IMG/VR virus record: IMGVR_UViG_3300042549_005931
Span: 1-64,000 of that record
Reading direction: 5' to 3' (one strand)
DNA: 64,000 nt
This document shows, one piece after another, positions 17,824 to 47,310 of this stretch. The notes under the pieces were generated by a model. It ran no database searches and had not been told where the DNA came from. It saw only the letters and a list, made by a program, of their open reading frames with translations. Numbering within the stretch: position 1 is the first letter of the stretch; the number at the start of each line of letters is the position of its first letter. The position numbers and the translations under genes were made by a program.

Positions 17824-18927
17824 ATGAATATAACATTAGTATTGGCTGTTTACAATAACCTATCATTAACCAAAGAATGTTATAGACACATTCGTGGTTT
17901 GTATAATGATGCACCAATTGTTATTAGTAGTGGTGGGTCCGATGATGGTACATTCGAATGGTTAGAACAAACATCTGAGAATGATACACATTTTTCTTTT
18001 GTTCACGAATCTGAAAAGATAAACTTCTCGGAAAATTATAACCAAGGAATTAAACTTGTCGATACAGATAAGTTAGTTCTTATTCATAATGATATGGTTA
18101 TCGGTAAGGGTTTCTTAGAATCACTTGACAAACAACTAACTGAGAACATGTTATTATGTTACACCACTGTTGAACCACCAATCTTTAAAGGTCATAATAG
18201 ACCGGGTAAGTTCATATTGGATTGTGGAACATCATTCAATAACTTCAATATGAATTTGTTCAACCAATATATTGATAGTGTACCAAAAACTGGTAATCTA
18301 TATGATGGTGGTTCATTCTTTATGTCAGGATACAAATCATTATTTGAAGATGTAAACTATTTCGACGGGTTTAGTTTCTTTCCTTGTTTTTGTGAGGATG
18401 ATGACTTCTTAATAAGAACTAAACTTAAAGGTTACGACATCAAGACAACCGAAGAAGCAATAACGTATCATTTCGTTTCTAAGACCTCCAGATTTAGTGA
18501 TGAGTACAAAGACACCACAAAACAAAATGAACTCAACAGCAACCGAAATTTCATACGAAAATGGGGTATTCCATCTCATTTATTTACCATGATTAGGTAT
18601 TGGGAGGATGATGACTTCAAATATAAGAATTATGATATGGGTTTAACATTAGTAAACTCATCTCAATTAGAAATATTGGAACCATTTTTTGATAAGATAT
18701 CAATTGATAAGGTACCAGAAGATTACATAGTTTCCGAACAGAAAAAAACTAATTATGATTTAAGAAGTAAATTCACATTCATAGATAATGTTGATGTAAT
18801 GATTTACATTGATGGTAATATTTCTGAGATTGAGTTTGATGTTATTCAAAAACTAAGATTAAGTTTACCGGATTACGAACCGGGTATATACGAGAGTGGT
18901 AGATTAAAGATTGAGATTAAATCCTAA
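17824..18927 (+). CDS. GT2-like glycosyltransferase with C-terminal extension
   Basis: GSDDGT, IHNDM, CEDDDF, YHFVSKTSR. Confidence 0.85.
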   Translation: MNITLVLAVYNNLSLTKECYRHIRGLYNDAPIVISSGGSDDGTFEWLEQTSENDTHFSFVHESEKINFSENYNQGIKLVDTDKLVLIHNDMVIGKGFLESLDKQLTENMLLCYTTVEPPIFKGHNRPGKFILDCGTSFNNFNMNLFNQYIDSVPKTGNLYDGGSFFMSGYKSLFEDVNYFDGFSFFPCFCEDDDFLIRTKLKGYDIKTTEEAITYHFVSKTSRFSDEYKDTTKQNELNSNRNFIRKWGIPSHLFTMIRYWEDDDFKYKNYDMGLTLVNSSQLEILEPFFDKISIDKVPEDYIVSEQKKTNYDLRSKFTFIDNVDVMIYIDGNISEIEFDVIQKLRLSLPDYEPGIYESGRLKIEIKS

Positions 18928-19323
18928 TTTTTTAAATACGTTAATTGATTTTTTATTCCATTCATCAACGAATGATTTGACCGGTCCATTTGTGTGATTT
19001 TTAATCACAAGATATAACATATCTGTTGCACCGTAGTTTCTTTCACCGACATGTTGTTTAGAGAACACATTGTATATAACATCATCATCTAACCAGCAAT
19101 ACCCATAAATCTTTTTTTCATGATATGCAACAAAGAATTTATGACCATTTAAAATTCTGTCTTGTGCATCATCTAAATTAAACATTAAGTCCCAATTAAG
19201 TTCATTGTTAAACATCTTTATACAATGTTTAATAATTTGGTAGTCATATGTTTCTTGGATTTCAATTTCTTCTGATATATTTCTATCAATTAAATCATTT
19301 GAATTAAGAATATAATTAATCAT
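18904..19323 (-). CDS. GNAT-like acetyltransferase
   Basis: IYGYCW, YNVFS, VDEWNKKSINVFKKLGF (motif B N..S..F.KLGF). Confidence 0.65.
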   Translation of the reverse strand: MINYILNSNDLIDRNISEEIEIQETYDYQIIKHCIKMFNNELNWDLMFNLDDAQDRILNGHKFFVAYHEKKIYGYCWLDDDVIYNVFSKQHVGERNYGATDMLYLVIKNHTNGPVKSFVDEWNKKSINVFKKLGFNLNL

Positions 19324-20027
19324 ATTAATACGTTTCTTTTTTGGAATTGTTTTTCAAACTTATCCCAAACCCATTGTTTTAATTCATCATTTATCACAAT
19401 TTTACTACTTACTTTACTACTATGATTTAATTTTTCAATGTTTAGTCTTTCTCCAAACTGATTATAAATGAAATCTGAAAATTTATCAATTTCAGATATA
19501 TCAAATTCATAATCTGCCGGTTCATTTTCTTTAATCCAATTTTGAGATAGTAGAACCGATAATATACCATTATAATGTCTAACGACGAATCCATTAATAA
19601 GATGAATATCTTTTAGTTCTTTTTCTTTTATCAATCTTAAATGAATACTATCCCATTCAGAATTATCAGTAGAGTATAATGTATTCACAAACTCAAAATC
19701 AAATGTTTTAAAAATAAAATCATTATCAACATCTTCCCATTTTATAATTGGTGTGTATAATTTTGATTTTTCCGTTATATGAAAAAAATATTGTAGACCT
19801 GACAACCACTTATCAAACCAATCTCTTTTTATACAGATAGTTTTCCGTATTCCAAACTCTTCATATAATATAGATTTTTTAAAATGAGTATGTTCATTTG
19901 GGTATTCTAAATCCAAATCTAAACGTTTTATATTTAAATTTGAAGTTAATAAAGCTTTTTCTATTGAAACGGATGCACATCTTGGAATTGATAACCAAAT
20001 CAATTCATTATTTATCAGTAACCCCAT
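19320..20027 (-). CDS. Sulfotransferase-like protein
   Basis: LSIPRCASVSI resembles the 5'-PSB loop (HIPKxAxTS); KRDWFDKWLSG resembles the 3'-PB motif. Confidence 0.6.
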   Translation of the reverse strand: MGLLINNELIWLSIPRCASVSIEKALLTSNLNIKRLDLDLEYPNEHTHFKKSILYEEFGIRKTICIKRDWFDKWLSGLQYFFHITEKSKLYTPIIKWEDVDNDFIFKTFDFEFVNTLYSTDNSEWDSIHLRLIKEKELKDIHLINGFVVRHYNGILSVLLSQNWIKENEPADYEFDISEIDKFSDFIYNQFGERLNIEKLNHSSKVSSKIVINDELKQWVWDKFEKQFQKRNVLI

Positions 20028-20042
20028 TGAATAAATTTATAT

Positions 20043-20135
20043 TTACGAATTTTCAACAATAATTAAAGAGCCAATTGTTGCCATTGTTTCATTTAAAACT
20101 TGTATCTGTTCGTTTGTTAATTTTGTATATTCCAT
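20043..20135 (-). CDS. 30-aa ORF (MEYTKLTNEQIQVLNETMATIGSLIIVENS), not in ORF track
   Basis: Fills the gap between the Hint fusion and the sulfotransferase-like gene on the same strand; A-rich upstream. Confidence 0.55.
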   Translation of the reverse strand: MEYTKLTNEQIQVLNETMATIGSLIIVENS

Positions 20136-20154
20136 TATATTTTTTATTTAATAA

Positions 20155-21663
20155 TTAGCAACCACCCGTACAATAACCATTATAACCCCCAAATTCGGTT
20201 GCATAGGTACCAATACATCTAAAACCTTTACCACAGGTGGCATTGTTACATTCGGAACATGGGTCATTATAATATCCACCACAAAAACAAGCTGAACCTT
20301 CACTGTTGTGTTCTATGGCAACATACGATGTTGTATTATTCTCATCCGATTTTGTTAAAAATAAATGTTGTCTTTCAACCGTTAATACCCACCCCTCAAA
20401 TATACTATGTGTTCTTTCTATTGTACTTACTATTTTTTGAACAAAAGATAATTCTGATGTTGAAGTATCGATTAACATAACAATGTCACCCGGTTTAAGA
20501 ATACCTATCCTAATAAATCTAATAACATCATCTCTTTCAACCAAATATCTTGATTCCGATACATCACTCCATGTACTACCATCTTGGAATCCTATTGTTA
20601 TAGAATTTGTTTTTCTGTGAATTCTAACCTTGTTAGTGATTTTATTTGTAGAATAGGTTGAACCCGTAATTAATTGGTTTATATCTATTTCATAATTTAC
20701 ATCTTCATCTATAACATCTACATTATTAGGGTTGGGTATGTCTATAGTTTTTAAATCGTCGCCAATTTCTAAATCTAACGCCGTTTTAAAACTACCATCG
20801 GCCATTTCAACTAAATCAGTATCTTCTAATTTTGGTGTCCAATCACTCTTAATTGTTGTTAAATAACGGGCTCTATCGCCTAAATAACTAAAATTAATTT
20901 CATCGTATTCTGGTTGTTCATCTATGGTATCAAAACATATTTTATGATATTGACCAATTTGTAATGATTCTAAATTGGGTGGAAATAATAAATTTAAACT
21001 TCTTACAACTTGTATATGGTTGTTATATAATTTATTAGAATTATAATAATATGGCATTAAAAAATATTCACCATTAACTTCATTAAGTATTGTATTTAAT
21101 TCTTCTTGAGTTGATACTTTAAATAATTTCGGGTATTGTGATTTATTATAATGTGGACCCGAAGTTTTTAGTATAAAATTTGGGTGGTTACCGTTATCAA
21201 GTATGTTTGTTATTGAATTTACCAAGGTACCATCACCTAAACGGTATGCAAATTCGGAACCAAATGATTGATTTTTTATTAGATTTAAAAAATTAACTTT
21301 ATTAGAACAATATTCATCATCAACAATCGCTGTTGTATCATACGCACTTCGTATAATTAATGTGGTATCATTATCTTCTATATATGGTATTGTTAATGAA
21401 CTATATACTGTATGCATATTACATTCAATATCTACAGATTTAGAAAGTTCATCATAAAAACCAGGTATAGCTCCAATGTATTCAATTTTAGTGAAACCGT
21501 TGTCACTGATAAATTGTAGTAAACTTGTTAGATTAAGTGATTCCTCATTTGATTCAATTCTTGTAGTAAGATTGTCCCATCCAACATTTGTATTGATTTC
21601 AATTGGGACTAAATCCCCATTTGAATTATACATAAAATCGCTACCAATTAAAACTGTCCTCAT
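20155..21663 (-). CDS. Circularly permuted ATP-grasp domain, Hint domain and Cys-rich C-terminal peptide fusion
   Basis: N-terminal GSDF..GDLVPIEINTNVG (D..ExN), PNFILK, YFLMPYY, VVRS; Hint from about K278 (LEDTDLVEMADGSFKTALDLEIGD) to WVLTVERQHLFL..AIEHN453; then a 49-aa, 8-Cys peptide. Confidence 0.75.
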   Translation of the reverse strand: MRTVLIGSDFMYNSNGDLVPIEINTNVGWDNLTTRIESNEESLNLTSLLQFISDNGFTKIEYIGAIPGFYDELSKSVDIECNMHTVYSSLTIPYIEDNDTTLIIRSAYDTTAIVDDEYCSNKVNFLNLIKNQSFGSEFAYRLGDGTLVNSITNILDNGNHPNFILKTSGPHYNKSQYPKLFKVSTQEELNTILNEVNGEYFLMPYYYNSNKLYNNHIQVVRSLNLLFPPNLESLQIGQYHKICFDTIDEQPEYDEINFSYLGDRARYLTTIKSDWTPKLEDTDLVEMADGSFKTALDLEIGDDLKTIDIPNPNNVDVIDEDVNYEIDINQLITGSTYSTNKITNKVRIHRKTNSITIGFQDGSTWSDVSESRYLVERDDVIRFIRIGILKPGDIVMLIDTSTSELSFVQKIVSTIERTHSIFEGWVLTVERQHLFLTKSDENNTTSYVAIEHNSEGSACFCGGYYNDPCSECNNATCGKGFRCIGTYATEFGGYNGYCTGGC

Positions 21664-21935
21664 TATATTATTGTTTTATTGTATTTTTTTGTGGACACAT
21701 CCACCTCGTCAACTTTATCCCAATGACCTAATCTACACGCACCTTTAATTGGTGAGAAAATTTTTTTACCGATTGGACATCCACACTCACCACATTTGGT
21801 TTCAAATAAATAAGAATTTCTTATCCAATCACATTTTAAACAAATCTCATGTCGCTTTAGTGCCAGTTCTTGTTCTTCTTCTGTTGGATTAGCCGCAGTT
21901 ACCCAAGATTTAAATATTTCAGTGGCCTTGTTCAT
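21663..21935 (-). CDS. Small Cys-rich, putative metal-binding protein
   Basis: RHEICLKC..KCGECGC..KIFSP..AC.LGHW pattern. Confidence 0.7.
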   Translation of the reverse strand: MNKATEIFKSWVTAANPTEEEQELALKRHEICLKCDWIRNSYLFETKCGECGCPIGKKIFSPIKGACRLGHWDKVDEVDVSTKKYNKTII

Positions 21936-21939
21936 TTAA

Positions 21940-21947
21940 TATAAATA
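21940..21947 (-). promoter_or_regulatory. TATTTATA motif upstream of the Cys-protein/ATP-grasp-Hint unit
   Basis: TATAAATA on + strand, 4 nt from ATG 21935. Confidence 0.4.
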
Positions 21948-21953
21948 GTTTGT

Positions 21954-22067
21954 TTAATGTTTGTAAATAAATGGGTCTCGTTTTCTTAACTCCTTCAATT
22001 TTTTCTTAAATTTCCTGTTACGTCTCCATTCTTTGAAGATACGTATTAACCAATTAATGAATAACAT
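21954..22067 (-). CDS. 37-aa basic peptide (MLFINWLIRIFKEWRRNRKFKKKLKELRKRDPFIYKH), not in ORF track
   Basis: Directly downstream of the carbamoyltransferase; ends in DPFIY. Confidence 0.7.
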   Translation of the reverse strand: MLFINWLIRIFKEWRRNRKFKKKLKELRKRDPFIYKH

Positions 22068-22073
22068 ATTATC

Positions 22074-23744
22074 TTATTTATATACAATATAGTTATTTAA
22101 TACCAAAATATCAAGTTCGGTATCGTAAAACGTTTTTAATGCATCTTGTGGTGTTAATACCATTGTTTTATCTTTCACATTGAATGATGTGTTTAATAAA
22201 ATTGGGTATCCTGTTAATTTTTCAAATTCTCGGAGTATATTATAAAATAACGTTCCTCTATATACTGTTTGAACTCTGGCACTACCATCTATGTGTGTCA
22301 CTGCCGGTAATTCATCTCTATGTGATTGTCTCACTTGAACCACTTGATTCATGTAAGGTATATCATTTGTCATCATAAAATAATCGTGTTGTCTTTCCAT
22401 TGTTACCGCCGGTGCAAATGGTCTGAAAGATTCACGCTTTTTAATGACACTATTAATCCTATCCTTCATGTTAGGTAACAATGGACTTGCTAAGATGGAA
22501 CGATTACCTAACGCTCTTGAACCAAATTCACATTTACCGTTAAAACATCCAACCACTTTACCATCTTTAATTTTCTTTGCAATCCAAATCGCTAATTGTT
22601 CGTCATTAGGAAATTTAAAATGTTTAGGATTTTTACCAATAGCATCCACAATATCTTTATTAGAATATGATGGACCCAAAAATGGGTTATTAGTTATTTT
22701 CTTTTTTAATTTATTGTTCTTGACCAAGTAATGAATACATGCTCCGATTGCTGAACCAGCATCTGATGGTGCCGGTGGTATCCATAAATTTTTAAAATTT
22801 GTATTGTTAATTATTTTACCATTTGCAGTACCGTTATATGCACAACCACCAGCTAATGATAGGTCGGTATTATCAAGAAATGTGGATATATAATTGAGAA
22901 CCTCAAATAAAATTTCTTCGTATACTCGTTGTACTGATGCAGCCAAATCATTATGATATGGTTCAATACCTGTACCGGGTATTCTTGGTTCTAATTCCAA
23001 TAACTCAATAAGATTTTCATTAAACATGAGTGTGTTGGAGGTGTTCCAAGTAAACACATCCATGTTACATTTTAATTCATTATCTTCATACGTTATTAAT
23101 TTCCTAACTTTATTGATGTATGTGTTTGGATTACCGTAAGAAGCTAATCCCATCACCTTATATTCACCTTCATTTGGTCTAAACCCAAGGAATGATGTCA
23201 TTGCAGAATAGAACAATCCAAGTGAATGTGGATATTGTGCAAGACTATCATAAACCATATTCCCACCATAATCAATAAACCCAAGTGACATGGTATCTAA
23301 TTCACCAACACCATCGATTGATAATGTTGTGGATTTATTAAATGGTGATGTGTAATGTGAATAGTATATGTGCGATTCGTGATGTGTTGAATAATGTACG
23401 TTATTTGAATATAACGGTAACATCTTATTCAATTCACTAATGTTCTTTTTAATTCTTAAATACGATTTGATAGAATATATTGGATTCTTAAAAAACTGTG
23501 GTTTAATGTTATCGATAACCCTTTTTAATTTTAATTTAGGGTCTTCATAATAACAAACAGTTTCAATTTTATCACGAGTTAAATTATATTTTTTAAAAAT
23601 ATATTCAAGTGTATTAACCGGAAACGAACTATCGTGTTTGATACCCGTGAACTTTTCTTCTTCACATGCAAAAATTAATTCCCCGTTCTTGAATAAACAA
23701 GCCGATGAATCATGATAATAAGCCGAAATTCCGATTATGTACAT
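22074..23744 (-). CDS. NodU/CmcH-family carbamoyltransferase
   Basis: HDSSA..EEKF..KH, HHESH, IDGVGE, EYKVMGLASYG, AGGCAYNGTANG, EFGSRALGNRSIL, RPFAP, THIDGSARVQT, LLNTSFN. Confidence 0.95.
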   Translation of the reverse strand: MYIIGISAYYHDSSACLFKNGELIFACEEEKFTGIKHDSSFPVNTLEYIFKKYNLTRDKIETVCYYEDPKLKLKRVIDNIKPQFFKNPIYSIKSYLRIKKNISELNKMLPLYSNNVHYSTHHESHIYYSHYTSPFNKSTTLSIDGVGELDTMSLGFIDYGGNMVYDSLAQYPHSLGLFYSAMTSFLGFRPNEGEYKVMGLASYGNPNTYINKVRKLITYEDNELKCNMDVFTWNTSNTLMFNENLIELLELEPRIPGTGIEPYHNDLAASVQRVYEEILFEVLNYISTFLDNTDLSLAGGCAYNGTANGKIINNTNFKNLWIPPAPSDAGSAIGACIHYLVKNNKLKKKITNNPFLGPSYSNKDIVDAIGKNPKHFKFPNDEQLAIWIAKKIKDGKVVGCFNGKCEFGSRALGNRSILASPLLPNMKDRINSVIKKRESFRPFAPAVTMERQHDYFMMTNDIPYMNQVVQVRQSHRDELPAVTHIDGSARVQTVYRGTLFYNILREFEKLTGYPILLNTSFNVKDKTMVLTPQDALKTFYDTELDILVLNNYIVYK

Positions 23745-28777: not shown

Positions 28778-29505
28778 GTTCTATTTTTTTCTATGTATAT
28801 GTGATTGTTATTACCTGTAAAATCAAATATTTTAAATTTAGTTAATTCTTTAAAATCATATAATCCCAATAAACCATATCTTTCTGAATTTACATATTCG
28901 TTATATTGATTTAAATTATTCACATAATCTGTTTTTATTAATTTAATTTCAGAATCTGTTAAATTATTTTTAGATAATAACAAATATTTGAAATCGATAC
29001 AATATGTTGGTTCATTATCGAATTTATCGTTACCTAACAAAATTTGTGGATTTTCATGTTGACTAAAAATGTTATCACCCACTTCAATCTCAAATATGAA
29101 CTCATAATCAATATAATATTTTATTTTTTTATCTTTTACTGAATAATTTACAGTGAATTCATAATTTTTATTGAATTCAAAATTAAAATTTAAACCTTTT
29201 CTTGTGATGTCTTCTTTATCGTTGATATTGAAAGAACAATTAGTAAAAAATAAATTGGAATAGATTGTTTGACCGTCCGAATCTTGGTAGGTGTGTGGAT
29301 TTATACCAATTGAAAAAATAAAGGGTACTTTCCAAAATATTGCAATTGGTTCATTAGTGTAATTCTCTTTTTTATCAACAGAAAATTCAACATGTACCGT
29401 AAAATCGTTATCATTAAAAACATTTTTACAAATTTCACCTTTTTCTAAGTTATATGTTTTTAATGATGGCCACAAAATTAATGTCTGGTCTTTTTCTACC
29501 CTCAT
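28774..29505 (-). CDS. Divergent LamG/ConA-like domain protein
   Basis: Beta-rich; ends LLGLYDF..IFDFTGNNNH like the LamG inserts in the neighbouring GT7s. Confidence 0.5.
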   Translation of the reverse strand: MRVEKDQTLILWPSLKTYNLEKGEICKNVFNDNDFTVHVEFSVDKKENYTNEPIAIFWKVPFIFSIGINPHTYQDSDGQTIYSNLFFTNCSFNINDKEDITRKGLNFNFEFNKNYEFTVNYSVKDKKIKYYIDYEFIFEIEVGDNIFSQHENPQILLGNDKFDNEPTYCIDFKYLLLSKNNLTDSEIKLIKTDYVNNLNQYNEYVNSERYGLLGLYDFKELTKFKIFDFTGNNNHIYIEKNRT

Positions 29506-30884
29506 ATTTTATTTTTTATTTTATGATAAAATTCTTCCATCTCGGGAAATGTTTTTAAAAAATTAGTACCTCTTCTTAAATCATGTTCATCAACAAATTT
29601 AACAAAATCAATTCGATTTTGGTTTAAATCTTCATCTTCGGATAATGACCAATCATATATTCTTTTAATTTTTTGAACTTCAATATCATTAAATCCCATA
29701 GTATTACCGTCATAATTTTCAACTGAATTGTACACCACAAATTCTGCTTGTTTTCTTATCAATTCTTTATGTTCCGGTTCTAATATTTTAACTGTCTGAT
29801 GTGGTGGGTATCTTAAATAAGATGCATCGACCGGTGCCGTTGTTAACCAATATCTATGAAAATTTTTGTGTTGTTTTCTTAAATCCAATACATTCTTTAA
29901 AAAAGTCCTAAAAGAAAAAACACTTAATGCGTTATATGTTGTCATAAACACAATAGTCACTTTTGGTACTTTTTCTAAAATCTTATTTACATTGTCCCAA
30001 AAACTATTAAATTCTAATCCATGTCTAATATATTCGGCCTGTGCTCCCCACCCATCTAATGATGTGTATATTATCATTTCGTTTACCAAATCTTTATCGG
30101 TAATAATTTGTAATTTTTGAATTAATCTATCAATTAAATTGTTAGGTACACCTAAATTTGAATTTATGGATAAGTTTAACTTAGTATTTGGGGATGGATG
30201 TTCTATAATATAATCCAATACGTTCCAAGTATCTTTACTTAATAATGGTTCCCCACCAGTTATCCTAAATGTATGTAAATCTTTATATAAATCCGGCCAC
30301 CAATCCCAAAATGCCTCCACATATGGATTATGTTCAGAATGTTTATATGGCATTTTACCTCCGGATTTAATCCAACTTAATTCACCAAAATCGTTGGATG
30401 TTGGGTATTTTCCATATCTTTCAATCTCTTCCATCCATTTAGATGAAAACATTGGTCCGCAATATGAACATTTAAAATTACAAGTATTTGAAAAAGATAC
30501 TTCCACGTATTTTGGATTATAGTTTTCCCTCCAACTTAAATTTTTAATTTCATCAAAATATTGTTGTGACCATGGTTCTTCGGATTTAAAAACTCTATCT
30601 GATAACATATCTGAATTATCCTCAACATCCCAACAGTACTTACATTCTTTTGGTCTTTCACCATTTAACATTTGTTTTCTTGCTTCTTTTTTTTCCTTAG
30701 TGTTATGTAAGGCGGTAGGATTCCTTGATAATTCAGATAGTGGTATTTTATGTGGTGTTGGATGATGACACGAATGTGTTAATCCATTATGTAAATGCAT
30801 AGTAACTTGTGTCCATTTAGCCAAACAAAATCCACACCCAACAGAGTCTAACTTATTTTTTATTTGATTATGAACATCACTCAT
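29502..30884 (-). CDS. Radical SAM protein with an N-terminal Cys-rich (twitch/SPASM-like) region
   Basis: CNFKCSYC, ITGGEPLL, N-terminal CLAKW..SCHH..ECKYCW. Confidence 0.9.
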   Translation of the reverse strand: MSDVHNQIKNKLDSVGCGFCLAKWTQVTMHLHNGLTHSCHHPTPHKIPLSELSRNPTALHNTKEKKEARKQMLNGERPKECKYCWDVEDNSDMLSDRVFKSEEPWSQQYFDEIKNLSWRENYNPKYVEVSFSNTCNFKCSYCGPMFSSKWMEEIERYGKYPTSNDFGELSWIKSGGKMPYKHSEHNPYVEAFWDWWPDLYKDLHTFRITGGEPLLSKDTWNVLDYIIEHPSPNTKLNLSINSNLGVPNNLIDRLIQKLQIITDKDLVNEMIIYTSLDGWGAQAEYIRHGLEFNSFWDNVNKILEKVPKVTIVFMTTYNALSVFSFRTFLKNVLDLRKQHKNFHRYWLTTAPVDASYLRYPPHQTVKILEPEHKELIRKQAEFVVYNSVENYDGNTMGFNDIEVQKIKRIYDWSLSEDEDLNQNRIDFVKFVDEHDLRRGTNFLKTFPEMEEFYHKIKNKI

Positions 30885-36197: not shown

Positions 36198-36653
36198 TTA
36201 GACTTTTTTAACAAGTTCATTATCCATAATAGTCTCAATTGTTTCATAAACTGTTCTGTTTGTGGTGTCTATATCAATAAAATTATCTGTTGGTTCTTGA
36301 TAATTTTCAACATGAAATTGTTCTCTACCCCTAATATCTGAGGTGTGAACAAATATTTCAACTACATTTTCTTTTAATTCTTTTTTAAAATTATCCCTCA
36401 AATCTTTAAACGGTGACACTATTGACATGACAACATTTTTACCATCATTAAACGAAAGTTTTGCCATGTTTTGTGCAAGTTCAATATTTGTTCTTCTCCC
36501 ATTTTCAGAATAATCTTTGTTTTGTGTTAAATTACGCAAGTCGTCACCGTCAATGTGATGTACGTTTGTCAATTTATGTTCACACAGATATTTTGCTAAT
36601 GTTGTTTTACCGGCACCAGGTTGTCCAATAAAATAAAAAATCTTCTTACTCAT
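36198..36653 (-). CDS. cysC: Adenylyl-sulfate (APS) kinase, compact form
   Basis: GQPGAGKTT P-loop, IDGDDLR, YSENGRRTNI, SPFKDLR, YQEP. Confidence 0.85.
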   Translation of the reverse strand: MSKKIFYFIGQPGAGKTTLAKYLCEHKLTNVHHIDGDDLRNLTQNKDYSENGRRTNIELAQNMAKLSFNDGKNVVMSIVSPFKDLRDNFKKELKENVVEIFVHTSDIRGREQFHVENYQEPTDNFIDIDTTNRTVYETIETIMDNELVKKV

Positions 36654-40950: not shown

Positions 40951-41535
40951 CTATCTAAATGTAGAACCGCCAACCCACAAGACTAAACTTTTACGAACGC
41001 CTTGGGTCACCGGTGTTATTCTATGTAACATATAACTTGGAAATAAAATTGCACATCCTTTATGTTTTTCTACGTTTTGGATACCTGCACCTGTCCACAA
41101 TTCTAACTCACCACCTTCATAATCCTCGGGATTCGATAGCTGAATGGTTATACTTACTTTTCTATGGTTAATAGGATGTGGACCAATGTCCATATGCCAT
41201 CCATAATGTCCACCATCATCATAATATTCGGTATATTGTATTGAGTCAACTATTGAATGTAAATCAAATTTCCAAACATTATTTGCTTCCAAAATAAACG
41301 ATTGTATTTTATCATATACCCAATGTGATTTATCATCAATATGAATCCATTTAACTTTTGATTTACGAACATTTTTTACTTCATCACCTCCTACAACGGT
41401 AGCTTCTTCATATGGATATAATTCTTTAAGATTATCTATCCATTCCAATTCTTGCTCAGAAAATCCTTCTTTAAAGCAATAGTAATTTGATTGGTCAATC
41501 GTTGAGTCTGTATTGAAAATTGGTTTAATTTGCAT
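40951..41535 (-). CDS. 2OG-Fe(II) oxygenase (PKHD/prolyl-hydroxylase-like)
   Basis: WHMD, RKVSITIQLS..YEGGEL, FPSYMLHRITPVT.G.RKSLVLW. Confidence 0.9.
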   Translation of the reverse strand: MQIKPIFNTDSTIDQSNYYCFKEGFSEQELEWIDNLKELYPYEEATVVGGDEVKNVRKSKVKWIHIDDKSHWVYDKIQSFILEANNVWKFDLHSIVDSIQYTEYYDDGGHYGWHMDIGPHPINHRKVSITIQLSNPEDYEGGELELWTGAGIQNVEKHKGCAILFPSYMLHRITPVTQGVRKSLVLWVGGSTFR

Positions 41536-42172
41536 GATTTATTAATTTTTTTACCACATCTTGAAACGTATCGGATTCTAATTGCATCACATGTTCATAA
41601 TCTTTACTTGTAACACTCAATTCACCAACTGCCTTAAAATTAGTTATGTTATATATTTTTCTTTTATGATAATCTTTATTCCACCAATATAATAAGTCAT
41701 CACCAAAAAATACTTTTAATCCTTTGTCGATAACAATGTAGTTTGATTTTTTGATTATCATCATACAACCAAAACCTAAACTTCTACACGGTGCTTCTTC
41801 AAAAATATAATCATCATTATCGTTATTGTGTTCTTCATAAAAGTTTGCATTTGCATCAAACCCAATAACACCAAAATCTAAATCATTGATTCTTGATAAG
41901 TTGTGATGTAAATTTTTAAAATTAAAACTTATATCATCATTCAATATACATAAAATTTCGTTAGTTGCATACTCAAAACCTAAATTCCACGCAGGATTTA
42001 CAAAAATGTTCTCATCTTGTTTGAATACTTTTATTTGTGGGTCATTAAATGATGAATCTGTGTTATCGATAACAATAAATTCTGAATTTGGAATGTTGGC
42101 TTCTTTAAATAATTCGATATTGTCCAATATCTTATCCGATTTCCACAAAGTTGGGGTTATAAATGTTATCAT
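41525..42172 (-). CDS. GT2-like glycosyltransferase
   Basis: VIDN, VNPAWNLG, ILNDD, FGC, FFGDD. Confidence 0.75.
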   Translation of the reverse strand: MITFITPTLWKSDKILDNIELFKEANIPNSEFIVIDNTDSSFNDPQIKVFKQDENIFVNPAWNLGFEYATNEILCILNDDISFNFKNLHHNLSRINDLDFGVIGFDANANFYEEHNNDNDDYIFEEAPCRSLGFGCMMIIKKSNYIVIDKGLKVFFGDDLLYWWNKDYHKRKIYNITNFKAVGELSVTSKDYEHVMQLESDTFQDVVKKLINHAN

Positions 42173-42229
42173 ATTATCTAATATATAAATTTTATTAATA
42201 ATAAGGTATATTATAACTTAATTATTGTG

Positions 42230-42736
42230 TTAAAAAAATGATTGAAGGGTGATACGTAAATTAGCGTCTAAATTAACTGTGGATACTGAATGGTGTACAC
42301 CACCTGTTTGAATTACACCTAAGTTTCTTTCGGGTTTAATGGCTCTAATTTCATTATTTAACTTATACATAAAATAACCACCCCAATCTGGGTCCCAATA
42401 ATCATTTAAGTATATAGTCAATGCAGATTCTACATGTGAATCATCGTGCCATGGTATATAACTTAATTTAGTCCAAATATATAACATTAATTGTTCAACA
42501 TTTAGTCCTGTTTTAGCATCTATTTCAGCCTTTAATTTGTTATGTAAAGGACTATTCTCATCTATGTCTATTATTAAAACCGGTGTAGTTTGGTTTCTTA
42601 TTTCATCTGGCCAACAGAAATTAGTTCTTCCCAAATATGGATTAGGACTTTTTATAGTTTTTTCCGCAAATGTTTGTACTTCATCAAACAAATCGTTTGA
42701 TAGGAATTCATCATATACTATTATGTTCTTATTCAT
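42230..42736 (-). CDS. 2OG-Fe(II) oxygenase
   Basis: WHDD, TIYLN..WGG, HSVS, RITLQ. Confidence 0.88.
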   Translation of the reverse strand: MNKNIIVYDEFLSNDLFDEVQTFAEKTIKSPNPYLGRTNFCWPDEIRNQTTPVLIIDIDENSPLHNKLKAEIDAKTGLNVEQLMLYIWTKLSYIPWHDDSHVESALTIYLNDYWDPDWGGYFMYKLNNEIRAIKPERNLGVIQTGGVHHSVSTVNLDANLRITLQSFF

Positions 42737-42739
42737 AAT

Positions 42740-43381
42740 TTATGGTTTAGGGGGGTGAAAAAGGAATGGTTTAGGGGTGACAAATAAAAATTTACTTATA
42801 GCATATCTACCATACCCAGAAAATGGTGTGTTGTTTTGTATCATTTTTATAGGATTTACTGAGTGTAGATTATGAGATGGGAATATTACTAATCTATTAT
42901 TTTTATATTCTATTTCTGTTCTTTCATCACCCAACATTAAATTACCACCTTCAAATGATTGTGGAGTTTTATTACACCAATATATACAGGATAAAATGGC
43001 TTGGTCCTTGTGAGGTTTATAATAATCACTATCTTGATAGTAACTAATAAATGTTCGGTCATGTCCCACAAATTTAAAATATTTAAATTCATTGGGTAAA
43101 TCGTCTATAATATCGGATACTTCCTCATTATATATTTTTTCAAAATTATTTAATATGGTTGATGTTTCTCTTTTTTGGTATAAATCATCTAAAAATAAAA
43201 CATTATTTTTCTTTAATGGTATTTTTGTTTCGAGGTCTATTGCACCATTAGATTTTTCAGGAGGTAACATAATTTCCTCTTTAGTTAAAAAATCTAACTC
43301 TAACCAATTCTTTTTTAATTCGTCATCATTAAAAAAATCATCAATAATTAAATAATTGTAAGAACTACTTGTAACTTTCAT
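42740..43381 (-). CDS. 2OG-Fe(II) oxygenase
   Basis: PHKD, FEGGNL, NNRLVIFPS..HSV, GRYAI. Confidence 0.88.
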   Translation of the reverse strand: MKVTSSSYNYLIIDDFFNDDELKKNWLELDFLTKEEIMLPPEKSNGAIDLETKIPLKKNNVLFLDDLYQKRETSTILNNFEKIYNEEVSDIIDDLPNEFKYFKFVGHDRTFISYYQDSDYYKPHKDQAILSCIYWCNKTPQSFEGGNLMLGDERTEIEYKNNRLVIFPSHNLHSVNPIKMIQNNTPFSGYGRYAISKFLFVTPKPFLFHPPKP

Positions 43382-43386
43382 TTTAT

Positions 43387-43950
43387 TTATTTTTTATAAC
43401 AATACCATCCGGTTAGTATGTATTTTGTTTCTGTATTTGAAATAACTCCTCTATGGGTGTGAGTAAAATCGGCTGGCCATATTAGTAATTTACCCACTTC
43501 CGCCTTTTCAATGTGATTTTGATATAAAAACTCGGTACCGCCATCTTTAACATCATTTAAATAAATCATCCACACTAATAATCTATCGATATATTCCTTA
43601 TCTCCATTTCTTTCACAATGCCACCCATAAAATCCTTCTCCTGGTTCGTATTTTTGAAGATTGAATGTTGATAATGAAAATGGATTCATGTGTTTTAAAG
43701 CAGAATACTTTTCTACATATTCGTCTATTCCAATGTTTACTGATTTGACTAATTCATCAAATAAATCATACCATTCAATATAATTTTTTTCACTTTCTAA
43801 TATACCCGGATAAAATAAAATTTCACTCGCTCTTTTAAAGTCTTCAGGTAATTCAGATGATTGTTTTAAATCAGAATGTTCAAATGTGGTGATAAATTCT
43901 TCACATATCTCTTTAGATAAAACATTAGGTTTAGAATATATAAAATCCAT
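43387..43950 (-). CDS. 2OG-Fe(II) oxygenase (HxE type)
   Basis: QKYEPGEGFYGWHCE, YLNDV..GGTEF, WPA.FTHTHRG, KYILTGW. Confidence 0.88.
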   Translation of the reverse strand: MDFIYSKPNVLSKEICEEFITTFEHSDLKQSSELPEDFKRASEILFYPGILESEKNYIEWYDLFDELVKSVNIGIDEYVEKYSALKHMNPFSLSTFNLQKYEPGEGFYGWHCERNGDKEYIDRLLVWMIYLNDVKDGGTEFLYQNHIEKAEVGKLLIWPADFTHTHRGVISNTETKYILTGWYCYKK

Positions 43951-43951
43951 A

Positions 43952-44539
43952 TTATACTTTTAAAGAGTACCAACCCGTTATAATATATTTAGTTTTAGTG
44001 TTACTTATTTGTCCTCGATGATAGTGAGTCCAATCTGTTGGCCATATAAGTAACTTACCAGTTTCCGCCTTTTCAGTATGGTTTTGATACATAAATTCTG
44101 TACCCCCATCATCTAAATCATTTAAATAAACCATAAAAACTAACATTCTAGGTAATGTGGAGACATGTGCTCTCTCACAGTGCCATTGATGAAACCCTTC
44201 ACTAGGTTTGTATTTCTGTATATTATACCCATCTAAAACAAATTTAGACATGTTTTCTAAAGGTTCATAACGTTCAACATAATTATCAATTTCGAATTGT
44301 AATTTGTTTTGAAATTTATTAACTAAACTACCCCATTCTTTTTTATTTTCTTCCTTATCCAAAAAATTGGGCCAAAATGTAACGTCAGTAGACTGTTTTA
44401 TATAATCTACTTCTACAGCTTCACCATATTTTCCGGCAATACATCCTCTAGCACGTAATGGTGATGACTCAAATTTATTGATTAAATCCGCACACATTTC
44501 AGAAGATAAAAAATTGTTTTTTCTATATATAAAATCCAT
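43952..44539 (-). CDS. 2OG-Fe(II) oxygenase (HxE type), paralogue of 43387..43950
   Basis: QKYKPSEGFHQWHCE, YLND..GGTEF, THYHRG, KYIITGW. Confidence 0.88.
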   Translation of the reverse strand: MDFIYRKNNFLSSEMCADLINKFESSPLRARGCIAGKYGEAVEVDYIKQSTDVTFWPNFLDKEENKKEWGSLVNKFQNKLQFEIDNYVERYEPLENMSKFVLDGYNIQKYKPSEGFHQWHCERAHVSTLPRMLVFMVYLNDLDDGGTEFMYQNHTEKAETGKLLIWPTDWTHYHRGQISNTKTKYIITGWYSLKV

Positions 44540-44540
44540 A

Positions 44541-45128
44541 TTATTTAAAAACAGTACCTCCTACCCACAATACTAAACTTTTACGAATACCCTTTGTTAC
44601 TGGTGTTACCCTATGTAAAATATAACTAGGAAATAACACCGCACACCCTTTTTCTTTAGGCATCTTACTTACTTTATTTCCCATCATCAACTCTAAATCA
44701 CCACCCTCATATTCATCGGGGTCAGATAATTGAACTGTTATACTAATTTTTCTTGTATTATAAGGATGTGGTCCAGTATCTACGTGCCAATCATAATGAC
44801 CACCATTTTCGTAGTATTGTGTGTATTGTACTGTATCTAAAATTGATGGTATATCGAATTGCCACATTTCTTTATTGGCCATCATAACAATATTGGATAA
44901 ACGACTATACACCCAATCTGTCTTTTCATCATGGGTTAACCATTTTACATCTGATTTTCGCATCGTATTCTCATCTTCAAACGCACCTGTGGATGCTTTT
45001 TGTATATCGTATAATTTTTGTAAATTATTTAACCATCCTAATTCTTCTTCGGAAAACGAATCGTAATAAGGATAAAACCCCATTGGGTTACTTTGACTAT
45101 GAACGGGAAATACCGGTTTTAAATCCAT
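44541..45128 (-). CDS. 2OG-Fe(II) oxygenase (PKHD-like), paralogue of 40951..41535
   Basis: WHVD, RKISITVQLS..YEGGDL, HRVTPVTKGIRKSLVLW; ATG at 45128 aligns with the paralogue's start. Confidence 0.9.
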   Translation of the reverse strand: MDLKPVFPVHSQSNPMGFYPYYDSFSEEELGWLNNLQKLYDIQKASTGAFEDENTMRKSDVKWLTHDEKTDWVYSRLSNIVMMANKEMWQFDIPSILDTVQYTQYYENGGHYDWHVDTGPHPYNTRKISITVQLSDPDEYEGGDLELMMGNKVSKMPKEKGCAVLFPSYILHRVTPVTKGIRKSLVLWVGGTVFK

Positions 45129-45138
45129 AACTTTTTTT

Positions 45139-45681
45139 TTATAATTCAAACGAAAAACCATATGACAAATTAATTCTTAATTTATCACCTTTAACTACTT
45201 CTGAAGAATGTTCCACTATACCAGCATCACACCTCCATAACATTTTTTCTTCAACTGGAAGTAATTCACCACCATATATTGGTTTACCTCCACCATCGGG
45301 AAACGAAATTAATAAATTATATCTAACAGTATAATATTCACGAAAACTATCATCAATGTGTGGTTCAACATATGAGTCTTCCCCAACAATCCCTATCCAA
45401 TCATAATTTACAGGTGCGTGTAAGGGATTTGTAATGTTTTCTAAATCTAATATTTTATTTCTTATTGCATAAAATATATTTGGTTTTTCATCATTGGGAT
45501 ATAATATTCTAAAATGACGTTTTAATCCTGATTTATATTGGTCTTTTTCTGAATTTACGGGTTGGGAAAAACTCATACCTGTTTGTTCGGATAATACCCA
45601 ATCTCTTAACTCCGATTGTTCATCATCATTAATAAAATCTCTATAACCATAGGTTCCGCCAAAATATACTTTTTCAAACAT
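45139..45681 (-). CDS. 2OG-Fe(II) oxygenase-like protein
   Basis: PHID, YNLLISFPDGGG, EHSS, RINLSYGF. Confidence 0.7.
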   Translation of the reverse strand: MFEKVYFGGTYGYRDFINDDEQSELRDWVLSEQTGMSFSQPVNSEKDQYKSGLKRHFRILYPNDEKPNIFYAIRNKILDLENITNPLHAPVNYDWIGIVGEDSYVEPHIDDSFREYYTVRYNLLISFPDGGGKPIYGGELLPVEEKMLWRCDAGIVEHSSEVVKGDKLRINLSYGFSFEL

Positions 45682-45687
45682 AATTTA

Positions 45688-47310
45688 TTATTTCAAATAT
45701 ATTAAAAAATCTGCGTGGTCTTGTAATATTTTTAAATTTAATAACATATTTCTTTTAAATTTCTCATCGAAAGTAAAAAAATGTTCTCTACGAACGTCAC
45801 TATTAGTGGCTCCATAAAGTTCAAACGCTCTTTCTCTATTAAATAAATGTAACCCATTAGTTATCGCATAAAAACTAGATACATCATACGCGTCATTAAT
45901 TGTTTTTATAAATTTACGTTCCGGCATAGTAATAGAACATTGTTCTAAGTATTTTTCTATGTTTTCTGTAATTTTATTTTTATCTCTAAATGTTTTCCAA
46001 AATTCAGAATCACTACGTTTTGTTAAATAATGTAGGTAAATAAAATCTTTAGTATCATCGTGAAATTTGTTCACTCTCTCATTATATCTATTAATATAAA
46101 ACTCATTGTTTGAAATAGCACCTAAATTATTGGAGATATACTCATTTAATGATGTAGTGATTGTCCAAATTGATGTTGCTTCTAACGGTTCGATAAAACC
46201 GGAAGACAAACCAATAGCTATACAGTTTTTAATCCACGTTTGTTTGTATCGTCCGGCATCATATGTAAATGGATTACCAAATTCGATATCGTTTCCAAAT
46301 CGTTCTTTGATTTCTTCCTTTGCTTGTTCATCTGAAATAAAATCTGAATCAAACACATAACCACAACCAAATCTACCTTCAACCGGTATCTTCCACATCC
46401 ATCCATATTTTAAAGCAATTGATTCTGTATATGGTGGTACATCATTACTTTCATTAGGGATTACAAATGGGATTGCTCGTTTCATTGGTAAACTATCTGA
46501 ATATGATTCCCATTCACCCTTAAAATGTTTACCGATAATTAATCTATTGAACCCACTACAATCAAACACAAAATTACAAGGTAATTTATCACCCCGTTTA
46601 GTTGTAATTTCTTTTATAGAACCATCATTTTCATTACTTATAATTTCATTGAGTTCGGATTCAACATACCTAACTCCACGGTACATAGCATTCTTTTTTA
46701 AAAACTTGGCCAATAATCTAGCGTCAAAATGCATACCAAAACTAGATAATGAATTAAAATGTGTAATTGGGTTTTGGTCTTTATTATCTATATTTACAGA
46801 TGGAATAAAGTTAACTAAATTTCTTTTTGATGCATTAGCACTAAATGAAATATCATCCAATGATTCTCCTTTAGCAATTGAATTTAAAACTAAAGTAGAA
46901 ATCCCACCACCATTTGTTGCATCATTAGTTTCGAATGAATTTACATTTGTGTTTTCAAAAAATGGGTGAAAATATGACGTATCATCACCATTCCAATCGG
47001 TAAATTTAATACCACTTTTGATTGTTCCTTTCGCATATTTTACAATATCTGAAACGGAAATTCCTACACTGTCCATAAAATGAACAAAATGTGGTGTTGT
47101 TCCTTCACCAGCACCTAAAATACCAATTTCAGCACTTGCCAATACGGTAATATTAATCCATGGATAGTTTTTCTTTAAAAATAAAGCAGTCATCCATCCG
47201 GCAGTTCCACCACCTACAATGACAAAATTGAATTTATTTTCTATAACCTTGTCTAACGATTGGTCCATAGGGCCAATAGGACCGATTGGTCCAATTTGTT
47301 CTTCTTCCAT
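45688..47310 (-). CDS. Flavin-dependent halogenase (tryptophan-halogenase family)
   Basis: GGGTAGW, GAGEGT, TIKSGIKF (catalytic Lys position), DCSGF, GWMWKIP, FIEPLEATSI. Confidence 0.9.
   Translation of the reverse strand: MEEEQIGPIGPIGPMDQSLDKVIENKFNFVIVGGGTAGWMTALFLKKNYPWINITVLASAEIGILGAGEGTTPHFVHFMDSVGISVSDIVKYAKGTIKSGIKFTDWNGDDTSYFHPFFENTNVNSFETNDATNGGGISTLVLNSIAKGESLDDISFSANASKRNLVNFIPSVNIDNKDQNPITHFNSLSSFGMHFDARLLAKFLKKNAMYRGVRYVESELNEIISNENDGSIKEITTKRGDKLPCNFVFDCSGFNRLIIGKHFKGEWESYSDSLPMKRAIPFVIPNESNDVPPYTESIALKYGWMWKIPVEGRFGCGYVFDSDFISDEQAKEEIKERFGNDIEFGNPFTYDAGRYKQTWIKNCIAIGLSSGFIEPLEATSIWTITTSLNEYISNNLGAISNNEFYINRYNERVNKFHDDTKDFIYLHYLTKRSDSEFWKTFRDKNKITENIEKYLEQCSITMPERKFIKTINDAYDVSSFYAITNGLHLFNRERAFELYGATNSDVRREHFFTFDEKFKRNMLLNLKILQDHADFLIYLK

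Follow-up and report, generated by a model that had tools for sequence, protein, structure and literature searches.

The DNA examined here, called the window below, consists of positions 1-64,000 of the 269-kb IMG/VR virus record IMGVR_UViG_3300042549_005931 (~30% GC), and this report concerns a minus-strand gene cassette within it, at positions 18904-21947, whose central gene encodes a protein of 502 amino acids (aa). This fusion protein carries, in one chain, a probable ATP-grasp domain, a Hint (hedgehog/intein-type) domain and a hypervariable Cys-rich tail, and its gene is accompanied by those of a 90-aa six-Cys protein, a 30-aa peptide, a 235-aa sulfotransferase-like protein and a 139-aa protein resembling Gcn5-related N-acetyltransferases (GNATs) (Table 1). 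The first-pass annotation of this DNA had described five tightly packed minus-strand open reading frames (ORFs) that converge with the plus strand near 18.9 kb, and this was confirmed: the stop codon of the 90-aa gene overlaps the fusion start (TAATG), gaps of 19 and 15 nucleotides (nt) flank the 30-aa ORF, the 235-aa and 139-aa genes overlap by ATGA, and the 139-aa gene overlaps a plus-strand glycosyltransferase gene by 24 nt. Its notion of a bounded five-gene unit was not borne out. Indeed, a 37-aa ORF and a carbamoyltransferase gene lie upstream on the same strand (gaps of 18 and 6 nt), and because the minus-strand gene run continues upstream and reaches the window end, the five genes are the 3' end of a much longer array. 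The window also encodes collagen-like tail fibres, thymidylate synthase, many glycosyltransferases and UDP-glucose dehydrogenase in addition to the carbamoyltransferase, a gene content that points to a large tailed phage as the source; further genes specify two tryptophan-halogenase-like proteins, several 2-oxoglutarate (2OG)-Fe(II) oxygenases and an adenosine 5'-phosphosulfate (APS) kinase. The stretch 18904-21947 was found near-identical in lake and freshwater metagenomes of ~10 or more studies.

Table 1. Features of the cassette and its surroundings (window positions unless a related locus is named; PSB, phosphosulfate-binding; PB, phosphate-binding; HMM, hidden Markov model)
Feature	Positions	Strand	Basis or remark
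90-aa six-Cys protein	21663-21935	-	ORF list; C-x2-C ... C-x2-C-G-C-P ... C-P-x2-K-W, zinc-ribbon-like, DUF6171-like
502-aa fusion protein	20155-21663	-	ORF list
Fusion aa 1-276, probable circularly permuted ATP-grasp amidoligase domain	20836..21663	-	Structure matches
Fusion aa 278-453, Hint (autoprocessing-type) domain	20305..20832	-	Lys at position 1, invariant Glu-His-Asn end
Fusion aa 454-502, Cys/Tyr/Gly-rich candidate cargo peptide	20158..20304	-	8 Cys, single Lys in C-G-K, C-terminal Cys
30-aa helical peptide ending Asn-Ser	20043-20135	-	HMM; predicted ATP-grasp partner
235-aa sulfotransferase-like protein	19320-20027	-	PRCASVS 5'-PSB-type, HxH and RDWFDKWLS 3'-PB-type motifs
139-aa GNAT-like protein	18904-19323	-	Sub-threshold GNAT matches; occasional neighbour
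TATTTATA motif	21940-21947	-	Named by the first-pass annotation; functional evidence none
37-aa ORF	21954-22067	-	Recurrent upstream neighbour, outside 18904-21947
35-37-aa ORF, copy in L082	4841-4954		Related locus
35-37-aa ORF, copy in L094	3826-3933		Related locus
Carbamoyltransferase	22074-23744	-	Pfam Carbam_trans_N and Carbam_trans_C, E 1e-62 or better
APS kinase	36198-36653	-	PF01583, E 2.6e-16
Glycosyltransferase, convergent with the cassette	17824-18927	+	ORF list

The fusion belongs to a large family whose members all lack a name. A word search returned more than 770 full-length relatives of ~500 aa with 48-93% identity (>770 clusters at 90% identity, 299 at 50%), and a profile of the ATP-grasp domain retrieved 299 representatives among 1.84 billion proteins, the domain standing at or near the N-terminus in all of the 150 matches listed. 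Gene neighbourhoods were compared in 80 related IMG/VR loci, which hold 56 distinct fusion sequences and which supply the counts given below. The fusion matched nothing in Pfam, PHROGs or PDB sequence profiles, and a Pfam search of 16 family members (E<=5) and a PDB profile search (E<=10) gave no hit. Likewise, among 50,697 GenBank phage records no match was obtained by blastn of the 18-23 kb region or by tblastn of the fusion or of the 90-aa protein, and the ATP-grasp alignment retrieved no relative from 185,579 prokaryotic species genomes, although that scan was pattern-based and distant relatives may escape it; thus, cultured-phage or cellular relatives were found neither in GenBank phages nor in prokaryotic species genomes. 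Among the BFVD viral structures, matches were to the Hint domain only, with no full-length look-alike. Note that one 211-kb record (IMGVR_UViG_3300042892_005961) carries two diverged copies of the cassette ~38 kb apart (L013 and L067), whose fusions are 50% and 43% identical to that of the window and bear different cargo peptides.

The AlphaFold2 model of the fusion, built on an 80-sequence alignment, has a mean predicted local distance difference test (pLDDT) score of 86, and the ATP-grasp domain folded alone reaches 90.5. In a VIA search of 48,161 PDB representatives, which is independent of Foldseek, the best 15 matches to this domain were all ATP-grasp enzymes (Z 7.9-5.2, 160-219 residues aligned), headed by a putative gamma-glutamylcysteine synthetase (3k1t, Z 7.9), YgiC (7.8), glutathionylspermidine synthetase (GspS, 7.8) and eukaryotic glutathione (GSH) synthetases (7.1-7.3). 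Foldseek matched the domain at E 2e-5, and its Atlas shape neighbours were GSP_synth, GSH_synth_ATP and CP_ATPgrasp_1/2 (template modelling score 0.53-0.58), while none of the known ATP-grasp Pfam families (GSP_synth, GSH_synth_ATP, CP_ATPgrasp_1/2, RimK) scored above threshold. Since Z values of 7-8 are middling, we regard the fold assignment as probable rather than certain. Folds of the GspS, YgiC and GSH synthetase type are collinear with the domain over residues 1-270, whereas the classical enzymes (RimK, LysX/ArgX, Ddl) align only from ~residue 56, which suggests a circular permutation; such a permutation would bring the Mg/ATP-binding strands to the N-terminus, and the alignment has the pattern expected for this. 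D9, E22, N24, R105, D115, K166 and R221 are near-universal (99-100% of 100 distant members), which suggests that the enzyme is active, and the arrangement D9 ... E22-x-N24-T, with a D-to-E spacing of 13, resembles the Ddl-type metal-binding motif. The description of a precursor-bearing ligase in the first-pass annotation therefore stands in so far as a ligase-type enzyme appears to be joined, through a Hint domain, to a peptide-like tail.

The Hint assignment comes from several comparisons. VIA-align superposed the domain on the bacterial intein-like (BIL) domain BIL2 (6y75) with Z 15.7 and a root-mean-square deviation of 2.3 A over 142 residues, on the NpuDnaB intein (4o1r) with Z 14.9, and on more than 40 intein, BIL and hedgehog autoprocessing structures with Z 12-15; Foldseek matched at E 1e-6, and model residues 278..453 span intein residue 1 to the C-terminal Asn. 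The Pfam Hint models gave no match, and an hhalign comparison with canonical Hints of distant family members (probability 96.9%, E 1.7e-10) placed K278 on Cys1, so that the fold belongs to the Hint superfamily by VIA, Foldseek and hhalign. As for the residues, K278, E451, H452 and N453 are invariant (80/80 sequences) and H433, at an F-block-like position, occurs in 75 of the 80. The Cys, Ser or Thr nucleophile of intein position 1 is thus replaced by Lys in every sequence, while the C-terminal His-Asn of inteins is present in every one and x-His-Asn is kept at the Hint end of most of the distant members. The residue at +1 varies (Ala, Val, Leu, Phe, Ser, Gly, Tyr and others), being Ser or Thr in only 11/80, and the family consensus has no conserved block B TxxH; hhalign aligned block A only. 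In canonical inteins, Cys1 starts splicing and cyclisation of the last Asn gives C-terminal cleavage (PMC8616854). Because the N-terminal nucleophile is lost and His452-Asn453 is kept, this Hint would be unable to splice but able to cut after Asn453; moreover, with Lys at position 1 and no conserved nucleophile at +1, neither splicing nor thioester chemistry seems possible. On the basis of fold, residues and comparative architecture, cleavage between Asn453 and Ser454 appears likely. The lost nucleophile would also suit a different protein, namely a stable three-part enzyme with an inactive Hint of structural or regulatory use, a metal-binding or oligomerisation tail, and glycan-acting neighbours, namely the sulfotransferase, the GNAT-like protein and the carbamoyltransferase, linked to it by gene order only. 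We consider such an enzyme unlikely, since, if Asn cyclisation did not take place, it would be difficult to see why a His-Asn pair is found in all 80 sequences and kept in most of the distant ones, and the tail and the neighbouring genes, discussed below, bear on it as well.

Beyond the Hint domain, the tail measures 27-63 aa across the 80 sequences and is made of 18% Cys, 13% Gly and 10% Tyr, with charged and aliphatic residues scarce. Its Cys count is even in 79/80 (8 in 55, 10 in 15 and 6 in 9 sequences), C-x(1,2)-K occurs in all 80 tails, 57 of them have exactly one Lys, and 9 have neither Asp nor Glu; apart from Cys, the Lys of C-x-K is the one residue that the cargo conserves. Mean pairwise identity is 0.31 in the tail (0.16 without the Cys columns) against 0.55 in the ATP-grasp and 0.51 in the Hint domain, and in sequence pairs whose bodies are ~85-95% identical the tails mostly share 44-78%. 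Judged from these sequences, the pattern is that of a disulfide-framework peptide under diversification. That the tail evolves fastest and keeps only its Cys framework is what one typically sees in a peptide that is released and interacts with others, rather than in a cofactor site, which is a second difficulty for the stable three-part enzyme.

Alternative architectures among the relatives bear directly on whether the tail is released. The region after the Hint x-His-Asn is varied; in the majority it is a Cys-rich peptide, frequently with a Lys at or close to its end, and in some relatives it extends to 145-1242 aa, in one case with BACON domains. In six relatives (P0247, P0264, P0286, P0291, P0300 and P0312, of which P0264 is locus L093), a peptide of 27-35 aa with 6-8 Cys lies between the His-Asn of a degenerate Hint and the Cys1 of a second Hint, which is fully canonical (Cys1, T-x-x-H-P-F, N-H-N-F-F-A-N-G-I-L-V-H-N). 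In another, P0239 (L094 5001-8147), a Cys-rich cargo of ~95 aa is followed by a Peptidase_S74-like self-cleaving end (GQK/SDVLYKENI..., the slash as the division); L094 keeps the 90-aa and 235-aa homologues and has APS kinase and carbamoyltransferase genes upstream. Because these relatives flank the peptide with two self-cleaving modules, excision of the cargo, and hence C-terminal cleavage by the first Hint, gains support; the two-module flanking constitutes strong comparative evidence, at the level of sequence, that the cargo would be excised, and it is not what a permanently attached tail would lead one to expect. Most of the six double-Hint relatives have Lys-Lys within a few residues after the second Hint His-Asn, and in four others (P0236, P0316, P0324 and P0349) the piece between the two Hints measures only 2-7 aa. 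The double-Hint relatives are the natural counterpart of the laboratory twin-intein arrangement for peptide cyclisation.

Three relatives of 315-317 aa (P0144, P0149 and P0165) lack the Hint and tail and have the 30-aa peptide fused to the end of the ATP-grasp domain. These Hint-less loci are also without the 90-aa and 235-aa genes. Since both genes are absent there and present in the Peptidase_S74-ending relative, they seem to travel with the Hint-plus-cargo half; the 30-aa peptide, retained in the Hint-less variants, travels with the ligase half. The variants suggest that the ligase and the 30-aa peptide also work in a cargo-free pathway, which the stable three-part enzyme would readily accommodate, while the absence of the zinc-ribbon and sulfotransferase genes precisely where Hint and cargo are absent speaks against neighbours linked by gene order only. 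Note that one Hint-less fusion gene is followed directly by a radical S-adenosylmethionine (SAM) enzyme gene (L082 6001-8003) and another by a GNAT-like homologue (L084 81-1508).

The variable tail also raises the question of a polymorphic-toxin-like protein, whose N-terminal part and Hint would deliver a diversifying effector (antibacterial, anti-competitor or receptor-binding) while the ligase acts elsewhere and a small downstream gene protects. The succession of a conserved N-part, a Hint and a variable C-terminal cargo does parallel the pretoxin-HINT proteins (PMC3113570), the cargo types are hypervariable and diverse (Cys-rich peptides, BACON tails of ~1200 aa and others), and small ORFs lie directly downstream of the fusion gene. 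However, the N-terminus shows no secretion or trafficking domain but an enzyme-type fold in which residues of catalytic type are conserved; Pfam searches assigned none of the tails to a toxin family; and, although an immunity gene would normally vary together with its toxin, those for the 30-aa and 90-aa proteins are conserved, the 30-aa product being moreover predicted to bind the ligase and not the cargo. We therefore hold a toxin of this kind to be improbable, and return to the reading in which the cargo is a peptide worked on by its own ligase and released by the Hint.

In this reading, the small partner of the ligase deserves attention. The first-pass annotation had pointed out an unannotated 30-aa ORF, and we find it to be a real gene: a hidden Markov model detects it in 80/80 loci (79 at E<1e-5), on the strand of the fusion and, in nearly all loci, starting 10-59 nt past the fusion stop, with the third codon position as the most variable one and with a C-terminus in which Asn29 is invariant and Ser30 nearly so. 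A chance ORF was thus rejected, given its presence in all loci, its natural fusions and the complex model. The complex modelling that had been proposed for this peptide was run with the ATP-grasp domain of the fusion and gave an interaction prediction score from aligned errors (ipSAE) of 0.93, against 0.01 for the best of three controls; 58/80 solved complexes and 2/110 mismatched pairs reach 0.93, a calibration that is rough since custom alignments were used. The partner is modelled at pLDDT 86-87 and the runs share >=85% of contacts, with peptide residues 13-26 placed on strand residues 6/8/10, 18/20 and 218-226 and on helices 113-134. As the helix is docked on the face opposite D9 and R221, the model suggests that a minimal ATP-grasp domain uses the peptide as a small subunit or as an activator. 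An immunity protein was rejected, the peptide being conserved while the cargo varies and being a predicted ligase binder.

A further possibility is that the 30-aa peptide, serving as a scaffold or carrier, is the true substrate of the ligase, its C-terminal Asn-Ser carboxylate being activated and then extended or joined to the cargo Lys, in the manner of LysW/LysX, RimK/S6 or Pup-like systems. GSH synthetase and GspS, the nearest folds, activate the C-terminal carboxylate of a small peptide; in addition, the ATP-grasp domain and the 30-aa peptide form a constant pair in all variants, even cargo-free ones, the two C-terminal residues are the conserved ones described above, and the cargo offers one conserved Lys. 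However, the model puts helix 13-26 opposite D9/R221 and gives no confident contact for residue 30, and both the natural fusion and the universal linkage would be accounted for equally well if the helix simply completed a minimal 276-aa domain, so that this possibility appears to us quite improbable, and the peptide is treated below as a partner of the cargo-modifying ligase.

Conservation of the neighbours across related phages had been put forward as a check on the cassette, and the outcome differs between genes: always on the strand of the fusion, the 30-aa and 90-aa genes accompany it in 80/80 and 79/80 loci and the 235-aa gene in 60/80, while the 139-aa gene does so in 11/80 only. The single locus without a 90-aa homologue has just 1.8 kb of downstream sequence. 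Of the 79 homologues, 77 lie downstream of the fusion and two upstream; an upstream position, as in the window, is otherwise seen only in these two loci, the gene usually standing downstream of the 30-aa ORF. The usual order is thus fusion, 30-aa ORF, 90-aa gene and sulfotransferase, and the 90-aa-first order of the window belongs to a minority. The 90-aa protein had been called a small metal-binding protein, which agrees with its zinc-ribbon-like six-Cys pattern: five of the six Cys are invariant in the family and the sixth is present in at least 90% of sequences. Weak matches to DUF6171 (PF19668) were obtained for 7/25 members (best E 4.8e-4, all under the 27-bit cut-off), other members gave weak zinc-ribbon family matches, and the Atlas neighbours include DUF6171.

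Of the two group-transfer enzymes announced by the first-pass annotation, the sulfotransferase holds and the GNAT-like one is doubtful. The 235-aa gene is present in 49 of the 65 loci with ample flanks and typically stands directly after the 90-aa gene. The window protein has no Pfam hit. Its family shares the motifs P-R/K-C-A-S-x-S, H-x-H and R-D/N-x-x-x-R/K-W-x-S, and the family profile aligns with heparan sulfate 2-O-sulfotransferase (3f5f, E 0.065) across lPrcAStS/vPKTASTS, HlH/HGH and RdwfdrwlS/RDPIERLVS, that is, over the 5'-PSB loop, the catalytic His and the 3'-PB motif. One of 26 homologues matches Sulfotransfer_2 (PF03567, E 5.5e-5), a family also found among the Atlas neighbours. 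From its motifs, the protein is very probably a sulfotransferase dependent on 3'-phosphoadenosine 5'-phosphosulfate (PAPS). APS kinase, a possible source of this sulfate donor, is encoded near the cassette in L082, L084 and L094, and 16 kb upstream of it in the window. By comparison, the 139-aa protein reaches E 0.031 with PF00583 (15 bits vs a 20.7 cut-off), and 12 of the 14 weak PDB profile matches of its family are GNATs, aligned mainly on a C-terminal N-x-x-S-I-x-L-F-x-x-L-G-F; the acetyl-CoA motif-A region (R/Q-x-x-G-x-G/A) is not conserved in this family.

The wider surroundings do not allow the cassette to be set apart from the sugar enzymes, as had been claimed. The 37-aa ORF and the carbamoyltransferase gene recur upstream of the fusion in 20/80 and 32/80 loci, and also in L082 and L094, APS kinase recurs nearby, and the closest structural relative of the sulfotransferase acts on a glycan. 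The window carbamoyltransferase is only ~25-36% identical to cyanophage, pelagiphage and other phage copies. The 35-37-aa ORF, identified by blastp, has a basic middle and the C-terminus K-R-D-P-F-(I/T)-Y-K-H, and always comes directly after the carbamoyltransferase gene. For the stable three-part enzyme, this island rich in glycosyltransferases, UDP-glucose dehydrogenase, carbamoyltransferase and APS kinase, together with the heparan sulfate 2-O-sulfotransferase as best solved match, speaks in favour. The proposed peptide-tailoring cluster would fit the gene content of related loci. In ~30 loci, a 176-177-aa protein without family match and a 2OG-Fe(II) oxygenase are encoded between the 30-aa and 90-aa genes (PF13640 at 9e-12 for oxygenases within cassettes), and one locus adds a Sulfotransfer_2 protein (1.4e-6) and an Asp/Asn beta-hydroxylase (PF05118, 6.6e-15). 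The inserted 176-177-aa protein (e.g., L014 9627-10157, directly after the 30-aa ORF) has no counterpart in the window cassette.

Several further observations were made in the surrounding DNA. Upstream in the same minus-strand array, the window encodes four 2OG-Fe(II) oxygenases and two proteins of the tryptophan-halogenase-like kind (40951-45161, 45688-47310 and 48910-50445), enzymes of types that could act on a Tyr-, Trp- or Pro-rich peptide. A 460-aa protein (29502-30884, minus strand) has a weak radical SAM match (E 1.3e-4), and L082 and L094 likewise have radical SAM/SPASM genes close to the cassette. The GC content of the window peaks at 0.47 at 52-54 kb (elsewhere ~0.30), in a 1042-aa collagen-like tail-fibre gene (50838-53966, minus strand).

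The motif TATTTATA had been noted ahead of the 90-aa gene, and it is indeed present there, ending 4 nt before the ATG. We rejected it as a promoter, given this proximity, its lack of enrichment in the window (11 occurrences vs 19.7 +/- 4.5 expected) and the chance level of sigma-70-like sites in the region (56 vs 49 +/- 7 expected). No terminator-like site was found at the 3' end of the cassette.

Altogether, these results suggest a model to which we give slightly better than an even chance: a tethered ligase would modify its own cargo, which Asn cyclisation in the Hint would then release, in a pathway resembling that of ribosomally synthesised and post-translationally modified peptides (RiPPs). 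The 502-aa chain would be enzyme, protease and substrate together, the tether standing in for the leader peptide of a RiPP and the Hint for the leader protease. Because the cargo is tethered, the conserved enzyme would need no leader for recognition, and the cargo would be free to diversify. Together with the 30-aa helix, which is predicted to dock behind its beta-sheet, the ATP-grasp domain would form one amide bond on the cargo, most plausibly at the C-x-K Lys or at the termini that cleavage sets free, a suggestion made with low confidence. Cyclisation of Asn453 in the degenerate Hint would cut the chain before Ser454 and free a 49-aa cargo. The six-Cys zinc-ribbon protein would probably handle the Cys-rich cargo, the sulfotransferase would decorate it, as would 2OG oxygenases and an Asp/Asn hydroxylase in other phages, and the GNAT-like gene would be an optional extra. 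Within this model, the cleavage step alone is likelier than the whole, and any specific ligation chemistry is much less likely.

A number of observations weigh against this model, which draws entirely on sequences, structure predictions and synteny. The match to the ATP-grasp fold is middling, with no sequence model of a known family matching, the fusion tail is modelled with low confidence (pLDDT 52-61), and the 30-aa helix sits, by strand parity, on the sheet face opposite the putative active site (D9, R221), so that it is not evidently a substrate. The nearest solved relative of the sulfotransferase sulfates a glycan and the cassette lies within a long sugar-modifying gene island; moreover, the Tyr content of the cargo with vs without a sulfotransferase gene does not differ significantly (p 0.11, with no phylogenetic correction). 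The ATP-grasp domain and its 30-aa peptide persist in Hint-less relatives that have no cargo at all, so that the ligase must have a cargo-independent function. Finally, the model leaves disulfide formation in the cytoplasm of the infected cell unexplained, and no RNA run containing the stretch 18904-21947 was found.

In a bolder form, for which we see somewhat less than an even chance, the cassette would represent a virus-encoded, leader-free and protease-free peptide route, in which the core peptide is a C-terminal extension of its own ATP-grasp ligase and is released by Asn cyclisation. The products of such a route, offered with the same reserve, would be hypervariable disulfide-rich peptides, maybe isopeptide-linked or head-to-tail cyclised, sulfated or hydroxylated, and cyclotide- or conotoxin-like, made by abundant freshwater phages. 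If true, enzyme, recognition element, protease and substrate would be united in one polypeptide with unlimited variation of the product, and the system could be used directly to express disulfide-rich peptides on a scaffold that needs neither leader nor protease. It also provides a first hypothesis for a large unannotated family of large uncultured aquatic phages, in which the peptide could be a target of the 2OG-Fe(II) oxygenases, sulfotransferases, halogenase-like enzymes and carbamoyltransferases that crowd their hypervariable islands, and the speed at which the cargo evolves suggests that it acts in interactions between phage and host or between phage and competitor. At this stage, the meaning of the cassette, as seen from sequences and models, is a hypothesis.

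Comparison with known systems shows where the cassette would depart from them. The closest enzymes by fold, GspS/YgiC/YjfC, eukaryotic GSH synthetase and CP_ATPgrasp, have their Mg/ATP-type D...E-x-N, Lys and Arg conserved in the phage domain, but the latter is far smaller (276 aa), seems to need the 30-aa peptide in trans and is fused to a Hint and a cargo. Borosins such as omphalotin (OphMA) have their core peptide translated as a C-terminal extension of its own modifying enzyme, and in graspetides (microviridin-type) a ribosomal peptide is the substrate of an ATP-grasp ligase, which a helical leader activates on binding. The phage system would differ from both in that release is autocatalytic through the Hint and not by a separate protease. 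Unlike in graspetides, the phage cargo is fused to the enzyme without a leader, the helical peptide is a separate gene, and no Asp, Glu, Thr or Ser crosslink partners are conserved, only Cys and one Lys. The 235-aa protein, for its part, aligns with Sulfotransfer_2/HS2ST in the PK-x-AS-x-S-type 5'-phosphosulfate loop, the HxH and the RD-x-x-x-R-x-x-S 3'-phosphate motif, though this match is sub-threshold (E 0.065).

As for the Hint, it shares its fold and terminal His-Asn with BIL domains and inteins (6y75, 4o1r) but has an invariant Lys1 and a non-conserved +1 residue, and its place is not within a host protein but at the joint of an enzyme and a hypervariable peptide. Pretoxin-HINT proteins (PF07591) also place a Hint ahead of a variable C-terminal module and were proposed to release a toxin by autoproteolysis (PMC3113570), and distant members of the fusion family carry an additional true PT-HINT domain. 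In the phage family, however, the N-part is an ATP-grasp-type enzyme, the cargo is mostly a Cys-rich peptide of 27-63 aa and not a nuclease or deaminase, the neighbours are conserved with no co-varying immunity gene evident, and the family was found in viral contigs only. Our literature searches found neither this architecture nor DUF6171 described, and no RiPPs released by a Hint. Every domain type is thus known, but their combination, in which an ATP-grasp ligase is joined to a Hint lacking the nucleophile and to a hypervariable peptide, and is accompanied by a split-off 30-aa partner and a dedicated zinc-ribbon protein, appears to be undescribed, and there is a substantial chance that the cassette represents a new class of peptide-maturation system.

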